Below are positions 11,324 to 20,886 of a stretch of 64,000 nucleotides of DNA, piece by piece. The position numbers were made by a program, and so were the translations under genes. The stretch spans positions 1,240,001 through 1,304,000 of the forward strand of contig OZ251239.1 in the NCBI GenBank assembly GCA_965240325.2, written 5' to 3'. This DNA is from Rebecca billardiae RCC1528. Lineage: Eukaryota > Protista > Haptophyta. Within the stretch, counting starts at the first letter, position 1. Each line of letters opens with the position of its first letter. Under the pieces are notes generated by a model. It made no database searches and was not told the DNA's origin. It saw nothing but the letters and a program-made list of their open reading frames with translations.

Positions 11324-12595
11324 TTAGCCATCCGCGTCAGCCTGGCACCGACGCCGCGCCTCCGACGCCACCATCGCCTCGAGCACCACCTCGGCGTAGC
11401 CGCACACGCGCGCCGCCTCTGCGCGCGCGACGAGCGTCGCAAAGCAGTCGGCCGGCAGCTCGGCGGCGCGCGCGAGCCGGCGCACCTCGGCGCGGAAGGC
11501 GCCGAGCCGCGCGGGCGCGTCGGGCGTGCGCGCCGCGTCGCGCGCGGCGTGCGCGAGCGCGGGCTCGTCGCCGCGCTCGAGCTGCTGCTGCAGCGCCTGC
11601 ACGTGCTGCCAGGCTGCGACGGAGCCGCCCTTGTCCGGGTGGAGCGCCGCGCACACCTTGCGCCACACGCCGCGCCGGAGCGCAAAGTACGGCCCGCGCG
11701 CGCGCGCGTACACGTCAAAGAGCCGCTCCGCGCGCGCCAGTGAGCCCTCCAGCTCGAGCGCCGCCGCCGCGGCCGCGTCGCGCGCCGCGGCCGCGTCGGC
11801 CTCTGACGCGGCGGACGCCGCGGCTGGCGGGCCCGGCGCGCCGCGCGCGCCCGACTCGGCCGTGGCCGGCGCGGCCGAGCCGGGCGCGCCGCTCCGGCTC
11901 GGCGCGAGATCGAGATCGAGATCGAGATCGAGATCGAGATCGAGCACAGGAGGCTGCGCGCGGACGGCGCGCGCGCATGCGCGCAGCCGGGGGCGGCGCG
12001 TGAGCGCGCGCGCGCGCATCGAGCCGTGCGCGAGCGCGCGCGCCCCGTGCGCGCGCCATCCGAGCGCGGCGCGCGCGGCGCCGCCCGCGTCGCGCGTGGC
12101 GCGCGCGCGCCTGCAGCCCGCACGTGAGCGCCAGGGGCGAGGGCAGCGCGCGATATTTGAGCAGCTTGGGCGAGTCCAGGACAAGGGGCAGCAGACGCTT
12201 GTCGGCCCTGTGGGGGCGTGCGGAGGGCGTGCGCGGCGCGCGCGGCGCGAGGACGCGCGTGGGGGCGGGGTCACGCGCCTCAGCCAGAAGATTCGAACGA
12301 TCACAAGGAGACGAAGCAGTGCACACAGCACAAAGCATGCAGCAGCGCACGCAGCGCATGCCATGCATGCATACGCGCGCGCGCCGCGCGGCAGCGGGCA
12401 ACAAGCGCCCGCGCGGCAACGATGGTGTGGACGTCGGCGAGGGGAGCGCGCGGGGCGTGGGCGCGCATGCGGGACGCAGCGCCGCGCGCCGGCGTGAAGG
12501 GCGGGCGCGTGCACGCCCTGGGCGGGCGGGGCGAACACAGCCGCCCCCGGCCACGCCGCGCGCCCGCGCGCGCGCGCGCGGGCGCGCGGCCGCGC

Positions 12596-12628
<33 letters not shown>

Positions 12629-15600
12629 CCTGCGGAATCGGCGGATGCAAATGAAATCGTTGCCGAAAATGCTCGCGAGCTGCTCGGCGGAGCGGCGGCG
12701 CAGGATGCCCTCCACCGAGCGGCCGAGGTAGACGGCGCACCGCCGGCCGAGCGCGGCGCGCGGCGCCTCCACCGTGCCTCCCTCCTCATCCTGTCGCGGC
12801 ACCGCACCGCACCGCGCGGCGCGGCGCGGCGCGGCGCGGCGCGGTGGCGGGGCGGTGGCGGGGCGGTGGCGGGGCGCGGTGGCGGGGCGGCGCGCGCGTT
12901 GGCGCACACTCGCGCGCGCGCGAGCGAGCGCGCACGCGGCTTGGAGCGCTGCTGCCCCTCGCGCTCGGGGGAGGGCCGCGCCGGGCCCTGCGCCCCGCGT
13001 GCGCGCGTGTGCGCCCCGCGTGCGCGCGTGTGCGCACGGCTGGCCGGGAGGGGGCAGGGCGGGGCTGGCGCTGACGCCCCGGCTGCGCGCGGGCGGCCCC
13101 GGCTGCGCTTGCGCGCGCGTGCGAACACACACGCGGCTGGCAGGCGCCGGGTGGCGCGCCGACGCATCGGTCGGTCCGGCGACGGCGCGCGCCGGCTGAG
13201 TGGGCCTCCGGCAGGCGCGCGCGCGCATAGACCAATAAAAACAAAAGTAAACCGCCCCCAAAACCCAACAAAAGAAAACAAATGCGCACGCACCTCAAAC
13301 ACTTCGTTCGAAAAGAAATACGTCCCTCGCATCGGGAAGTTGTGCTCGAACGCGGCGAATGGCGGCGTGAGGAGACGGCCGCGCACGCTGCCGCACGGCA
13401 GGGCACGCTCCTCGAGCAGGACGGCGTGCGCGGCTGCGTGCAGCGCGCGCGGCGGCGGTGTGGGCGACGAGGCGGCGCCAGGCGGCGCGGGCGGCGCGCC
13501 GGGCGGCGCGGGCCAGGCGCTCGGCACAGGCTCGGCCGCCGCGGGCGCGCCGCGTGCCTCCGCGCCCGCGGCGGCGGCGACATCGGTGCACGACGCCGGC
13601 GGCGACGCGCGAGCGTGCTGCGCCGCGGGCGGTGGCGCGGCGAGCGGCGGCGCGGGCGTGCACTCTGCCACACTCGGCGGCAGCTCCGGCGAGGCGCGCC
13701 GCACGGCCGAGCGCGCGACGAGCCAACCCCAGCGCACCACAAACAGACCGGCGCCGTCGTCGCGGCCCGCGGCGGCGGCCGACGGCTCGGCCGCGGCGCC
13801 GTCGCGCTTCGTATCTGTCGCCGCTCCGCCAGCGGCCGCGGACGTCGCCGCCGCCGGGCGCGCCGCCGCCGCCTCCACCTCAGGCACGAGCTCAATCGTC
13901 ACCGCCGCCGCCGCCGCACCGCCGCCGCCGCCTCCGCCGCCGCCGTCGTCGTCGCGGCGGGCGCGCGCCGCCGCCGGCCGGGCGGCCGGGGCGCCGGTAC
14001 TGGTGCTGGCGCCGAGCGGCGTGCTGCCCTCGGCGGCGGCCGGCGCGCCCGGCGGATCGCGCTCGGCCGCGGCCGCCGCCTCGTACGCCAGCGCGGGCGC
14101 GCGAGGCTCGACAGCCACGCCCGCGCTCGGCGGCGCCAGGGCCGCGACGGCGGCGGCGCGGCCCGGCGGCGCGGCGGCCGCGGCGGCCGCCGCGTCGCGC
14201 GCCGCCTGCCCAACCTCTGCGTTCGCCCTCGCCGCCTTCAGGTCGTGCAGGCTGGCGAGGCGGTAGTGGCAGCCGGCGGCGAGCGGGCACTCCGCGCAGC
14301 TCGGCACCTCCGCGCACAGGATCGCGCCGTGCGTGATCATCTGCACATGCGCTCGGAACAGCAGCTCCACGATCTCGAGCTCTGTGATCTCGGCGCGCGA
14401 GATTGCGGCGGCGCTCGCGGCCGTGAGTGTCTCTTCGACGAAACTCTGGGCGCGCACCGAGTAGCGCTTGAGCGCGGGGGGCACGTCCTCGATCTCGAGG
14501 GCCGAGATCGACGTCCACGGCCCGCGCAGCCGGATCGGCTGCTGCGGCGGCGGCGGCTCGGCGGACGCGGACGCGCCGCCGCCGCCGCCGCCGCCGCCGC
14601 AGCCAAAGGGCGGCGGCGCGCCGCGCGCGGGCGCGAGCGCGCCGCGCACAGGCGACTGGAGTGAAGGGTCGGGCTCGGCGGGCTGAGCGGCCGCGCTCGT
14701 CGAGGGCGCGGCGCGCGCGGCGGTGGTGCCTGCCGGCGGCGCGTGTGGCTGGGTAGCCGGGTTGGCGTTGATGGGCGCGGCGGCGTGCGCGTGCGGCGGC
14801 GGCGGCCATGCTGGCAGCTGCGCTGCGGCGCCGCCAGCCGCCGCCTCCGCCGCCGCCTCCGCGCTCGCCTCCGCGCCCGCCTCCGCGCCCGCCTCCGCGC
14901 GCGCCTCCGGCTCGGCGTCGTCGCGCGCAGAGGCCGCCCCCGACTCCGCCGCGCGCCGCGCGAGCTCGAGTCTCGTCGCGTCGCACACGTGGTACGCCCG
15001 ATGCACTCGGCAGAACAACCGCGGCGTCGCCTCGATGGCGATGCGAGCGCTTGGCGTCGCGCGACGGAACAGCTCGGAGCCGAGGTCGCTCGCGCGGGGC
15101 AGAGGCTGGGGCGGCGCGGCGGCGGCGCGGCGCGGCTCGGCCGCGTGCGGCGCGAGTATGAGCGCGCCGCACCCCGGCGGCCCCAACGCGGTGGCGACGC
15201 CGCCGCCGTGGGCCGCGGCGGCGACGACGGCAGTGGGGAGGGCGGGGGTGGCGCACGGCGCGCTGAGCGCGGCTCCTGTGACAGACATCGGCATAGGCAC
15301 CGCTGGCGACCCGCTCGGCGGCAGCGGCGCCGCCATCGAGCAGTCGCCGCCGCCAGCCGCAGCCACGAGCGCGAACGCGCCGTCGGCCGCGCCGCCGCCG
15401 AGCCCTCCCGCCGCCGCCGAGCCCGCCGCGGGCGCGCTCGGCGCAGCCGCGACCTGGCTCACCGCCGCCGCCGCCGCCGGCGCACCGCAGTGTTCGGTGG
15501 TTGGCCTGAGCGGCGCTGGCGGCGGCCGTCGGTCCGGCGGCGGTGCGTGCCGCGCGCTGGGCGGCGCGACGCGCACGCTCGCGAGCGGCACGAACGTGCA

Positions 15601-15681
15601 TGGGTCGAATGCGACAGCCCTGCCATCGCTCAGGGCCACCAGCGCCGCGGCCGGCAGCGCGGCGGCGGCAGCCATATTGTT

Positions 15682-15713
<32 letters not shown>

Positions 15714-18700
15714 GCGCCGCGGCGCGCGGCGCGCCGCCGCCGCCCGCGGGCGCGCGGGCGCGCAGCGCGGTGCACACGCGGTGTATGCACACGCTCTTGC
15801 GCGTGCCCTGCCCCCCGAAGCGTGGCTTGTCCAGGCAGCTCGCGCACTGCCCGCAGTCCGCACGCGCGCAGCCTTGGCACACGCCACACCGCGCGCGCCG
15901 CACGCGCGCGCCGCCGCCGGGCGGCGCGGCCGAAGTCATGCTCGCCTCCGGCCGGTTGTCGGCCAGGCTGCCTGCCGGGAGCGGCCCGGACACTGCGGCG
16001 GAGGCGATGCTCGGCGCCGCCGCCGCGAAGCAGCCCTCCGCCGGCCCGCCGGGCGGAGGCTGCGCCGACGGGCCGCACGGCGCGGAGGCGTCCGCGCCCG
16101 CCGCGGCCGCGGCCGCGGGCGCGGCTGCTGGTCCCTCTGGGTGACGCGCGGGCGGGTGCGCTGCGGAGGCGTGCGCCGCGGACATCGGCGTCGCAGCCGC
16201 CGCGCCGAGCGCCCCGCCATCCGAGCCCGCGCGGCCCGAGCCCGCCGCCGCCGCACGCGGCGCGGCTGCGCCGTGCTGCGCTGCCCCTGCACTGAGGCGC
16301 GCGTCGGCGCGCGCCGGCGGCGCGCCGGCGAGCTGCGCGACAGCCGCGGCCGGCGGCGCGGGGCCGGCGGCGCGCCACGCGGGCTGCACCTCGGCTCCGG
16401 GGCGAGGGTGTGGCGTGTGCAGGCCCGACCAGCCCGCGGCAGGCTCGGGCCCGACGGCGCCGCCCGGCAGCGGCGTCGCGCGTGGCGGCACCACGGCCGC
16501 TGCTTCGCGCGCCGACGCGCCCGCCGCCGCGCCGCCAGACGGCGGCGCGGCGGGCGCGCCGCGAGCGAGCGCGCAGCGCGCGGCGGGCGGCCGCGGGCTC
16601 GGCGTGCGCATGAGCACGGCCGCGGCTTGGACGGGCGCGCGCGGCGGCGAGAGCGCAGCCGAGTCCGTCTCCATCGGCGTGGGTGCTGCGCGCGCCGTCG
16701 CCGCCGCGCCCGCCGTTGCCTCGGCGGGCGGCGCGCGCGCGGCAGTCGCTGCCAGCTCAGCACTCGCCGCCGCCGCCATCACTTCCCCCGCGGCGGCCGC
16801 CGCCGTCGCCGCCGTCGCCGCCGCCACCGTTGTGTCCATGCGCTCGCCGAGCGCCCTGTCGGCTGCCGGCGCGCACGGTGGTGGCGGCGGCGGCATCGCC
16901 GCGTCCGCGTGCGCGGCGGCAGCCGGCGGGTACGCGCTCGGCGGCGACGCCGCGAGCGCCCGCGCATCCTGCGGCGCCTGCGGCGGCGGCGGCGGCGGTG
17001 GCATCAGCCGCAGCGGTGAAGGAGCGCCGCCACACGCGCCGCCGGTGGCCGCAGCGCCCGGCGGCAGCGGCAGCGCGGGCGGCTTCGGCGGCGCGACCGC
17101 GCGGGCGGGTGGCACGCGCACCGGCCCGCCCGCCCCGCCCGCGCCGCCGCCCGCCGCCCCCTTCGCCTCCCGCTCCGAGCGATGCTCGCCCTGCGCGAGC
17201 ACGCGCCGCGAGCCGCCGCCAAGCGCATCGACGGGGTCTGCGCCGATCGGAGTGAGCCAGCCGAGGCGCGTCATGACGCGGAGCACGTTGGCGTCGACGG
17301 CGAAGTCGACGCGGCGGAGGCGGTAGAGCACGAGGCACGCGATCGACTTGCGCGAGATCCCGGCGTACTGCATCAGGTACGCGCGCACCCGCGGCGTCGG
17401 CCAACTGTCGAGCGCCTCCAGACACGTTCTGCCCATGGTTGCGTGCACGCCTTTTAGAAACGCGAGAATGCGCTCGGCCTTGATGTGAAAGTACGGGCCG
17501 TGGCAGATGAGCGGCTCGATGTCCGCGGGCGCGCACCGGCGCACCGCGTCCCAGTCCGGCTCGCGCGCGCGCGGCGCCACGCTCAGCGACAGCCGCACCC
17601 GCCCGCCGCGCTCGACGCGCACGGCCGCGCGCGCGGCCGCACTCGGCGGGAAGGCGGCGTAAAAATTCGCATACGAAACGGAAGACCACGAGTTTCTGGT
17701 GTTCTGCGCGCAGATGAGCCCGATCAGCGTGCCGATCACCGAGGTGTGCCACGGGCGCGAGATGTGCGCGAGCGGGCCGTACACGCGGTCGAGCGCCGCC
17801 GAGAACGCGCGGAACGTGCCGAGCGCGTTCGCCGCGCTCAGCGCGCCATCGGGTCGCGCGCTCGCCAGCGCAGCCGTCTCGGCGCGCAGCGCTCGGAAGG
17901 CACCGCGGTGGTCGATGCGCGCGGGGCGGGAGGGGGCGGCGGCGGAGGCGGGGCCGACGCGCATCGGGAGCGGCGTCGCGCTGCCCAGCGCGCGAGCCAG
18001 CGCGCCGGCGAGCACCACCGCCATGCCGCCCGACCCGGCGCCGGCCGTGCCGTCGGCGCCGTCGGCGGCGCCGCGGCCGCGCGCGCCCGCTGCCGCGACG
18101 ATTAGCGCTCGCGACGACGGCGGCGGAGGCGCCGCCGCCGCGGCCGGCGCCGCGGCCGGCTCCGGCGGCGTGCTCGCTCCGCCCGCAAGCGCCTCGGCGA
18201 GGGCGGCGGGGGCGGCCGGCGGCGGCATGGCGGCGTCGACGGGCCCCGCCGACGCCGCGTGCCGCCCCGCGCCGTGCGCCGCTCCGAGCGGCGAGGCCGC
18301 AGCCGCCGCCGCGCGCGCCTCGGCCGCGCCGCGCGCGTCGTGGGCCGCGGGCGGCGGCTGAGGCGGCGGCGGCGGCGGCGGTGCGGGGACGGCGCGCGCG
18401 CGGACGCGCAGGCGGACGCGTGGCAGCGCGCGCGGCGCGCGCGCGCCCACGGGCTCCCCCTGCGCCACCGAGCCCGCGCGTGCGCCCGCCGAGCCATCGG
18501 CGGCGGCGGCGCCCGCACCGCTCGCAACGGCAAGCTCCGCGCAACACGGCTGCTGCCGCCGCCACGCCGCGTGCGCGGTGCGCACGTGCGCGCGCCACCG
18601 CTCGGGCGCGACGGCGCCGAGCGCGCGGCCCGACGCATCGACCTCGAAGAGCGCGTCGAGCCGGAGGCCGAGCAGCCGCTCCCACCCGAGATTGCTCGAG

Positions 18701-20886
18701 GGCGCGCCGATCTCCCCGCCGAGATTGCTCGAGGGCGCGCCGATCTCCCCGCCGAGATTGCTCAAGGGCGCGCCGATCTCGGCGCCGAGATCGGCCGAGC
18801 GCGCCCAATCCGCACTCGCCTGCGCGGCTCCAGCGCGCGCGCCGGTGGCGGCCGCGGCGGAGGGCGGCGCCAGCTGTGGCGCCGAGGGCCCCGCGCCATC
18901 CGCCGGCGGATCCGACGCCTCGGTGGCCGCGTGCGCCCCGGCGGCGGCCCGCGCCCCGACCGCGCATGCCGCAGCGCCGGGCGGCCGCGCGCCGCCCAGT
19001 CCCAGCCCGTCTCCGCCGCCCTGCTTGGCGCCGTGCCTGGGGCGCGCGCGCGCGCGCGGCGAGGGCTCGCCGCCGGCGAGCGCGAGCAGCGCCGGCAGCC
19101 GGCGGCGCTTGATCGGCCGACCGGCCGCGGAGTGCGCGCCGCTCCAGCCGCACGCGCCGCCGGCCGCCGCGCCGCCGCCGGCCGCCGCGCCGGTCGGGGC
19201 CTCATTCGCCTCCGCCTCCTCCGCCTCCGCCTCACACAGCGGGCAGGCGTAGGCGTGCGCGCTGCGGCCGAGGGCGGCGAGCTCGGCCGGGCCGAGGCCC
19301 GCGCACAGCGCGTGCACCCACAGCTCGCAACGGTCGCAGCACACCATCGCCCAGTCCTCCTCCGCACACGCTGTCGAGTTGGCGGCGGCGGCGGCGGCGG
19401 CGGCAGAACCTGCCGCGTCGGCGGCGGCTGCGGCGGCGGCTGCGGCGGCGGCGGCGGCGGCGGGCTGCGTGGACGGCGGCGATGGCGGCGCTGAGCGGGC
19501 GCAGCCGGCCGCGCGCGCGGTGCCGGCGTGCGCAGCCGCTGCGCCCGCCCCTGCGCCCGCGCCCGCCGCCGCCGCCGCCGCCTCGGCGCCTCCGCCGGTA
19601 CGCACCCCAGGCAGTGCCCACAGCTCCAGGCAGACGGGGCAGTACTCGCGCGCGCGCCACCGGGCGGCGCACGGCGCGCACGCGTGGATCAGGCCGCGGC
19701 CGGGCACCGTGCACGGCTGCACGCGGCACGCGGGCGGCTGCGCGCCGCCATTCGCCCGCCGCGCCTCCGCGACGCCGGCACCGCCGCCGCCACCGCCGCC
19801 GCCGCACGATTCGCACGCGCGGCCGGGCGGCGCGCGCGCAGGGTCACACGCGGGGCAAAGGTATTCGGTGCCGCCCTCGAGGCGCACGAGGGCGGCGGCG
19901 TCGAGCCCGTCGCACGCCGCGTGCACCCACATCGCACACCCGTCGCAGCACGCCATCTCCACCGAGTCCGGCGCCCACGCCGCCGCGCACACCGGACAGT
20001 ACGCCCCGGCCGCGTGCGCGCGCGCGCACGACTCGCACAGCAGCAGCCGCCCGTGGTCCGGCACCGCGGCGGGGCGCAGCCCGACGGCGGCGTGGGGCGA
20101 GCGCGGGGGGCAGACGGCGCAGCGCCGCGCGCGGCGTTTGGCGCTCGCGCCCGTCGCCGCGCTCGATGCGCCGCGCTTGCACGCGCCCTTGCTCTCCGCA
20201 GCCGCGGCCGGCGGCGGCGCCGCCGTCCTGGGCGGCGCGCGTGACGCAGCGGCGCCGACGCGCGCGCGCGCGGCGCCGGCAGAGGCCGAGGACGGCGCCT
20301 CGGCTGCGCGCGGGCGTGCGGCCGCGCGGGGCCCGTCGGCGCGCGCATCGCCGCGCCGTGCGCCTCCGATGCGCCCACCACGCGCGTGAGCGGGCCCGGC
20401 CTTCTCCGCGGCGGCGGCGGCCGCGCTCAGAGCCGCCCGCCAGCGCTCGGCTTGCAGCGCCACTCGCGCGACCTTGCCGTCGTCAAACTTGATCGTGCGC
20501 CGCGCGCGGGCGGCGTGCTGGGCGGGGTCGCCCGGCGGCGCGTCGAGCACCACGCCGGCGAGCCAGCCGCGCGGCTCCCCGCGCCAGACTTGAATGCGAG
20601 CGCCAAGACTCGGCTGCTCGCGCGCGCCGCCGCCGGCCGACGCGCGCCGCGTGGCAGCCTGGAGCTGCGGGGCGATGGGGTCGGCGGTCTCGGCGTCGGA
20701 AAACTTGCGCGGGGCGTGCCGCGCGCGAGGCGGCCGAGGCGCCGCGCTGCTTCGGAGCAGGCGCATGGGCACGCGGCGGGGTCGTGAGTCGATGACGATG
20801 GACGGCTGAGCCCGGGGAAAGACGGGCCCGAGCTTGCGGGCCGAGCCTTTTGCGGTGACGGCCGGGCGCGAAAGCCCTGCACGCAT
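11324..20886 (-). CDS. DEMETER/ROS1-like 5-methylcytosine DNA glycosylase/lyase with Tudor, two PHD, CXXC, HhH-GPD, 4Fe-4S and DME-type RRM domains, and a probable C-terminal J-like domain
   Basis: HhH-GPD (SVIGTLIGLICAQNT...GISRKSIACLVLYRLRRVDFAVDANVLRVMTRLGW) with catalytic K (17347-9) and D (17293-5). FeS motif CAEVPSCAECPLAAGC at 14269-14316. DME RRM VRGRLLTPPFAAFEHNFPMRGTYFFSNEVFE|DEE..AVYLGRSVEGIL..FICIRRFRR|ADKRLLPL across GT-AG introns 12791-13293 and 12208-12629. The last exon (11324-11953, HPDKGG) needs a GC-AG intron at 11954-12110, which is less certain. Start is 20886 or 20766. Confidence 0.88.

Follow-up and report, generated by a model that had tools for sequence, protein, structure and literature searches.

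A CXXC zinc finger probably nested within the catalytic domain of a DEMETER-family DNA glycosylase from the haptophyte Rebecca billardiae

The stretch of DNA presented above comes from a 64,000-nucleotide (nt) window of the Rebecca billardiae RCC1528 assembly (contig OZ251239.1, positions 1,240,001 to 1,304,000), and all coordinates given here are those of this window. Judged by its sequence, this DNA forms the central part of a single large HhH-GPD glycosylase gene of the DEMETER (DME)/ROS1 family, located on the minus strand at ~11.4–20.9 kb. The catalytic domain is divided by an in-frame insertion of 926 codons that contains a complete CXXC zinc finger, a layout shared with haptophyte relatives. 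The most probable explanation, held with reasonable though not full confidence, is a single DME/ROS1-type gene in which the CXXC-bearing loop insertion is translated and the two halves of the glycosylase fold together.

The GC content of the window ranges from 58 to 83%, reaching ~80% near the glycosylase and CXXC region. The gene occupies a minus-strand open frame running from 20886 to 12301, and because open frames carry little weight at this GC content, the domain calls rest on homology. An in-frame Pfam scan identified two PHD fingers, HhH-GPD, zf-CXXC and the start of RRM_DME, the HhH-GPD match being weak (19 bits, under the cut-off).

The divided glycosylase domain

The N-terminal half of the HhH-GPD domain (17245–17829, minus strand) is defined by similarity to ROS1 (7yhq), by alignment and by an AlphaFold model. 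In a phmmer comparison, window 17227–17829 matched the Arabidopsis ROS1 structure with an E-value of 2.6e-14, covering the base-flipping and HhH-Asp segments. This half holds the base-flipping segment ICAQNTRN, the HhH with the catalytic Lys (17347–17349), and the catalytic-Asp helix VDANVLRVMTRLGW, with the Asp at 17293–17295; the RLGW motif that follows ends at 17257 (amino acid (aa) 1210 of the open reading frame (ORF)). The C-terminal part (14230–14466, minus strand), recognised by phmmer against ROS1 and by alignment, comprises the helices LKRYSVRAQSFVEETL and LFRAHVQMITHGA and then the [4Fe-4S] loop, with the motif C-AEVPS-C-AE-C-PLAAG-C at 14269–14316. Window 14200–14580 matched the corresponding helix and Fe-S loop of ROS1 (residues 422–461) with an E-value of 0.008.

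The site of the split was located with a 78-row alignment, consisting of the window segment 14230–17829, 10 algal relatives and 67 plant-type or endonuclease III (EndoIII)-type relatives, collected by an exhaustive HMMER search. The catalytic Lys (segment position 161), the Asp (179) and the four Fe-S cysteines are invariant throughout. As the plant-type and EndoIII-type rows fill only segment positions 85–195 and 1122–1194, the insertion amounts to 926 aa (14467–17244), placed directly after helix VDANVLRVMTRLGW and ahead of helix LKRYSVRAQSFVEETL, which is the next helix of the four-helix/Fe-S lobe. This bears out the initial annotation, made from the letters alone, which had proposed a catalytic domain split by roughly 900 aa. 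Its placement of the RLGW end at about 17260 agrees with the position found here, and its restart at about 14540 differs slightly, since conserved sequence resumes at IEDVPPALKRY (~14493). Among representative homologues, the distance between the Asp motif and the Fe-S loop is 58–61 aa in plant-type and 32–44 aa in EndoIII-type relatives, and reaches 162–987 aa only in this clade.

In ROS1, a 258-aa linker separates helices 6b and 6c, with a short second insertion between helices 4c and 4d (PMC3045615). The window carries 24 extra aa at the 6b/6c site, where its relatives carry none, and by sequence the large insertion occupies a third site, apart from both of the plant DME-specific insertions. 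The Fe-S spacing, C-x5-C-x2-C-x5-C, which had been singled out as unusual, is real and common to the close relatives; x6 is found in the plant-type rows and in two remoter algal relatives. A permuted CXXC, previously reported as not visible between the Fe-S loop and the RRM, is indeed missing there: PF15629 gave no match, and a count on the translation found only 3 Cys in the ~310-aa linker.

Predicted fold

An AlphaFold2 model was built using the 78-row alignment. The predicted local distance difference test (pLDDT) score exceeds 90 for most of residues 1–200, with lower values in the 24-aa extra loop (residues ~71–90), and is 86–95 for residues 1121–1190. At the CXXC finger it is 54–76, and outside the finger and a second Cys/His island in the insertion, described below, it falls under 50 elsewhere. 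After the low-confidence stretches had been trimmed, the model superposed on the cryo-EM structure of ROS1 (7yhp_A) with a Z-score of 23.8 and a root-mean-square deviation of 1.8 Å, the 225 matched residues running from model position 1 to 1194. The trimmed model also superposed on 225 of the 242 residues of Deinococcus EndoIII-3. This coverage places both halves in position in the model, and the two are therefore predicted to form one fold like that of ROS1 and EndoIII, the outcome that structure prediction had been suggested to examine.

Coding status of the insertion

The insertion is mostly Ala/Pro/Gly-rich and, from its composition and pLDDT, predicted to be disordered. Its reading frame is free of stops, as had been noted from the sequence, against five and one in the other two frames (6.2 expected, P ~2e-3). 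Positional GC failed to tell exon from intron, and GC content was of no help because the introns are, at ~80% GC, as GC-rich as the exons. A test of Arg content by frame, calibrated on the homology-defined introns, was used instead. In the reading frame Arg accounts for 7% of the insertion, resembling the flanking conserved exons, compared with 36% and 29% in the other frames, whereas the gene's own introns contain ~20% Arg codons in every frame. Across all 40-codon windows listed, Arg was lowest in the reading frame.

Inserts of relatives encoded in DNA of 58–72% GC have no stops in frame, as opposed to 4–32 in the other frames (P 1.4e-12 to 7e-4). Taken with the order of conserved blocks in those relatives and the AlphaFold model, the frame-specific composition leads us to infer that the insertion is translated.

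The CXXC finger and the Cys/His island

The classical CXXC finger (15772–15906, minus strand) was matched by Pfam zf-CXXC (PF02008) at 50.4 bits, with an E-value of 2.2e-13 for the isolated segment. Its core, CGVC...CIHRVC, corresponds to aa 1667–1705 (15772–15888) and follows the pattern CxxCxxCx4CxxCxxC-x15-CxxRxC with eight Cys, reading CGVCQGCARADCGQCASC ... CIHRVC in the window, so that the complete finger described by the initial annotation stands. This is the canonical ZF-CxxC cysteine pattern, CxxCxxCx4/5CxxCxxC plus CxxRxC (PMC3685328). The linker is full-length, equal in length to that of MLL1/2, and has RFGG at the KFGG position.

In the Protein Data Bank, the best match of the finger is KMT2B (4pzi, E 7.8e-16), followed by MLL1, KDM2A/B, FBXL19, DNMT1 and MBD1. 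The type-1 fingers of KMT2B, MLL1, KDM2 and DNMT1 gave E-values of 8e-16 to 1e-7, and those of TET3 and CXXC4/5 2e-3 to 9e-3. By sequence, the finger is type-1-like (MLL/DNMT1-type) and not TET-type, and the earlier analogy to TET1/TET3 is weakened, TET3 scoring far lower than the nearest matches.

The KFGG motif had also been taken as the mark of binding to unmethylated CpG. In characterised fingers the motif is structural, and recognition of CpG falls to a dipeptide, KQ or RQ, absent from type-2 fingers (Long et al. 2013, PMC3685328). The R. billardiae finger has K-S at this position (R-K-S where KMT2B has K-K-Q); KQ or RQ is present in six relatives, and RK in Prymnesium. Since KQ/RQ is replaced by KS, canonical CpG readout is doubtful for this gene, and strict recognition of unmethylated CpG may be weakened or changed. 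The genomic setting bears on a further proposal, that the finger would keep unmethylated islands clear. Over window positions 1–64000 the observed/expected ratio (o/e) is 1.27 for CpG and 1.34 for GpC, and these counts gave no hint that methylation had driven a loss of CpG across the 64,000 nt, and no vertebrate-style CpG islands in the window. With a CpG at approximately every six bases, a CpG reader gives little positional information here, and the island-clearing role does not fit this landscape.

A second, smaller element, the Cys/His island (14920–15117, minus strand), was delimited by conservation and pLDDT. It contains a C-x2-H-x3-H-x-C motif, CRVHRAYHVC (14983–15012), followed by a helix. 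The motif is kept in the window, in four of the six relatives P0001–P0006, and in the Prymnesium genome locus. In the model the island has a pLDDT of 68–81 and forms short strands and a helix; it gave no Pfam match and, by its features, no usable Atlas match. This modelled fold suggests that it may be a small zinc-binding module.

Relatives and conserved layout

The nearest relatives are haptophyte proteins. Word searches returned Emiliania huxleyi EMIHUDRAFT_451890 and Prymnesium parvum AB1Y20_000123, along with several environmental proteins. The N-terminal halves share 45–53% identity with the window by BLASTP, and up to 61% over the matched stretches in the exhaustive HMMER search. The layout was checked in six ORFs, five of them full-length and one partial, and in two genome loci that were read anew. 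The window and P0001–P0006 share one order (RLGWL, CXXC, C-x2-H-x3-H-x-C, the IEDLP..LKR restart, then the Fe-S loop), with inserts of 235–920 aa in this comparison, and the same block order recurs at the genome loci of E. huxleyi and Prymnesium. A CXXC finger was found at the matching relative position in P0002–P0006, in the metagenome ORF P0008 together with the corresponding locus of E. huxleyi (L003), and at the locus L007 of Prymnesium. The comparison with orthologs suggested by the initial annotation thus returned the same insertion site in the relatives examined. In the remoter algal relatives P0013 and P0045 the CXXC is N-terminal to the glycosylase domain.

As to the nature of these records, P0002, P0004 and P0008 were ruled out as transcripts by their metagenome-scaffold names and were counted as genomic ORFs. 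P0005, represented by Logan contigs of near-ORF length from two sequencing runs, alone looks like a transcript.

The public gene models of both named species hide the finger. In E. huxleyi CCMP1516 (KB867347.1, L003:5235-5570), EMIHUDRAFT_451890 excises an in-frame, stop-free GT-AG stretch of ~324 nt (108 codons) that encodes a complete CXXC, while the genome and P0008 keep the finger in frame; this model is probably in error, unless the stretch serves as an alternative exitron. In P. parvum (CM083856.1, L007:5815-7450), AB1Y20_000123 passes over a ~1.6-kb open exon that holds beta-hairpin motifs, the CXXC (CKKCPACLRPHCGACAAC...) and the motif KMYCRQHHVYHVCDWTR. The skipped exon shares its frame with both flanking exons, has 0 stops where the other frames each have ~30 over the 2.2 kb around it, and is flanked by two short stop-containing stretches. 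Such models may explain why the layout is invisible in protein databases.

Some inserts carry further elements. The environmental relative P0003 has a pair of classical CXXC fingers, the first N-terminal and the second inside the insert, together with precomputed FHA-type Pfam hits (PF00498, PF16697). Ahead of the CXXC, the inserts of P0002 (880–950), P0003, P0004 and P0006 contain one to three copies of a ~20-aa motif, V.V.L.LAV...G.V.V.L, predicted to form beta-hairpins; the window insert has no clear copies of it. A model of P0002, which has the shortest insert, reached a mean pLDDT of 75.8 and placed beta-hairpin repeats ahead of the finger.

Family membership and proposed mechanism

Among the features of DEMETER-like (DML) glycosylases, the gene has an HhH-GPD domain with the catalytic Lys and Asp, the four-Cys [4Fe-4S] loop and RRM_DME. 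The long disordered 6b/6c linker, the permuted CXXC, and the full set of ROS1 pocket and flipping residues are missing. By its sequence, then, the protein is a member of the DME family in fold, Fe-S loop and RRM_DME. The ROS1 residues F589, T606, Q607, N608, D611 and Y1028 are here S, A, Q, N, N and V, only Q607 and N608 being kept. The A-Q pair in this flipping segment presumably resembles that of E. coli EndoIII.

Mutagenesis of ROS1 has shown a role for F589, T606, D611 and Y1028 in activity or in preference for 5-methylcytosine (5mC): mutation of F589 and Y1028 reverses the preference from 5mC to T, and T606 and D611 are essential (PMC3045615). Because these residues are changed, the base removed may be 5mC, T from a T:G mismatch, or another base.

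The favoured explanation may be put together as follows. Here and in the haptophyte relatives, the surface loop behind the catalytic-Asp helix (RLGW) would have expanded to 235–926 residues, translated mostly as a disordered Ala/Pro/Gly tether. This tether would carry two small folded modules in fixed order, the type-1-like CXXC and then the C-x2-H-x3-H-x-C island. The nested CXXC would serve as a flexibly tethered DNA-binding module, holding or steering the enzyme on CpG-dense, probably unmethylated DNA beside its substrate, as proposed by Zhang et al. (2019) for algal DME homologues. The interpretation offered by the initial annotation therefore fares unevenly: its anatomy is confirmed, while its functional claim is weaker than stated and expresses an idea already in print (PMC6717269).

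Alternative explanations

Several observations weigh against the favoured explanation: the four altered ROS1 residues, the K-S dipeptide, and the omission of the CXXC from both public gene models. A search for an RNA sequencing run for the organism found none listed, and a search of two protein libraries found no protein of the same species, the best identity being 61%. The reassembly of the halves by AlphaFold is expected from homology and is no proof of folding. In addition, no fewer than two canonical GT-AG introns, 420–500 nt long, interrupt the gene; being GC-rich and without stops themselves, they leave room for a modest-sized in-frame intron within the insertion. It is accordingly conceivable that splicing takes part of the insertion, perhaps with the CXXC, out of some or all mature mRNAs as an in-frame intron or exitron, which would give a shorter loop or two isoforms, with and without the finger. 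The stretch removed by the E. huxleyi model, and the lack of a listed RNA run, count in favour of this; the Arg depletion, however, is specific to the reading frame and spans the whole insertion, unlike in the true introns, the CXXC and CHHC island are conserved in sequence and order, and the inserts of lower-GC relatives are open in one frame only. Moreover, the E. huxleyi 'intron' cuts the first zinc cluster, and an intron or exitron is considered improbable. Even more readily dismissed, as very improbable, is an origin of the long open frame as a by-product of 80% GC, with the CXXC belonging to a separate nested gene or a decayed pseudogene. Spurious open frames of hundreds of codons do occur on both strands here, but the conserved blocks all lie in one frame, in the order that relatives of 58–72% GC show on single ORFs or contigs, and the chance of meeting no stop is ~2e-3 even in the window.

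The strongest competitor, though still unlikely, concerns the substrate. The protein may belong to the DME family by descent without being a 5mC demethylase; at CpG sites it would remove the T of a T:G pair or some other damaged pyrimidine, with the CXXC acting in recruitment, a logic like that of MBD4 with a different reader. The replacement of F589 and Y1028 by S and V, and of T606 and D611 by A and N, speaks for this, as does the presumed EndoIII-like A-Q pair of the flipping segment. Against it stand the presence of RRM_DME, ROS1 as the closest overall similarity, the retention of Q607 and N608, and the joining of the enzyme in this clade to chromatin readers (PHD, Tudor-like), which fits an epigenetic better than a repair use. 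A more speculative reading, with a rather low chance of being correct, is that the CXXC and its disordered arms form an intramolecular gate like the CXXC-linker of DNMT1, which on unmethylated CpG would hold the catalytic cleft off the DNA or closed and limit excision to methylated patches bordered by unmethylated DNA; or, alternatively, that the whole haptophyte clade consists of CpG-directed T:G repair enzymes. On balance, a single DME/ROS1-type gene with a translated, CXXC-bearing insertion remains the preferred account.

Remaining gene layout

The gene order is taken to be a Tudor-like region, the PHD fingers, the glycosylase domain, RRM_DME and a J-like tail. All of these features lie on the minus strand. 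Pfam PF00628 gave 32.7 bits with two stretches, one PHD finger lying at 19846–19998 and the second near 19222–19374. An imperfect tandem repeat, GEIGAPSSNLG, is present three times (18750–18860) in the linker that joins the PHD fingers to the glycosylase. Downstream of the Fe-S loop, the first RRM_DME exon piece (13294–13380; PF15628 positions 1–28, 21.9 bits) ends in NEVFE before a GT donor. RRM_DME exon 2 (12630–12790; PF15628 positions 49–85, 27.4 bits) was located by ortholog tblastn and splice sites. The two exons were scored apart, each falling under the PF15628 cut-off of 34.6 bits; in orthologs RRM_DME scores 56–59 bits. The GT-AG introns, placed by ortholog tblastn and splice-site reading, span 12791–13293 (~503 nt) and 12208–12629. 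The last exon (11384–11944) has a J-domain-like LHPDKGG motif that is kept in relatives; a Pfam search gave no DnaJ match for this tail.

Comparison with known systems

It appears that the DME-type fold can accommodate a very long insertion with domains of its own at a loop other than that used by plants, and that haptophyte algae keep a reader finger in this catalytic loop. The gene offers DNA demethylation biology a candidate for a natural reader-in-enzyme construct.

ROS1, the best structural match (Z 23.8), and DEMETER share with it the HhH-GPD domain with Lys and Asp, the [4Fe-4S] loop, RRM_DME, and a catalytic domain broken by disordered sequence. They differ in the place of the break, the 258-aa plant linker lying at 6b/6c and the large insertion of the window after the catalytic-Asp helix; in the permuted CXXC, which the window lacks; in the Fe-S spacing of x6 instead of x5; and in four pocket residues.

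A second comparison is with the DME homologues of other algae. Streptophyte DME has the permuted CXXC, whereas chlorophyte and stramenopile homologues have at least one classical CXXC 'at distinct positions', as well as Tudor, PHD, AT-hook and DnaJ domains, and these accessory domains may regulate the glycosylase by methylation status, according to Zhang and colleagues (2019, PMC6717269), who cite Iyer et al. 2011. The accessory domain set and the proposal linking CXXC to methylation status are the same here, and the gene almost certainly belongs to the group described there. The text of that article names chlorophytes and stramenopiles. Literature searches for haptophyte DME returned nothing specific. 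The pairing of algal DME with a classical CXXC is thus already published, and the nested topology and the second island may be undescribed details.

The finger itself can be compared with ZF-CxxC domains of type 1, those of KMT2A/B, KDM2A/B, DNMT1, CFP1 and MBD1 (CXXC3), having the same eight Cys, full-length xFGG linker and CxxRxC. It is unlike them in the K-S that replaces KQ/RQ, and in being nested in a loop of another domain and not set between domains. DNMT1, with its CXXC-autoinhibitory linker, and TET1/TET3 likewise attach a CpG-sensing finger to a writer or eraser of cytosine methylation; the TET fingers, however, belong to type 3 (short linker, HQ), and the window finger scores far lower against them, while an autoinhibitory role as in DNMT1 is only proposed here. 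MBD4 also joins a reader of CpG context to an HhH-GPD glycosylase, but its reader is an MBD, of the opposite type, and is N-terminal instead of nested, and the enzyme has neither Fe-S loop nor RRM.

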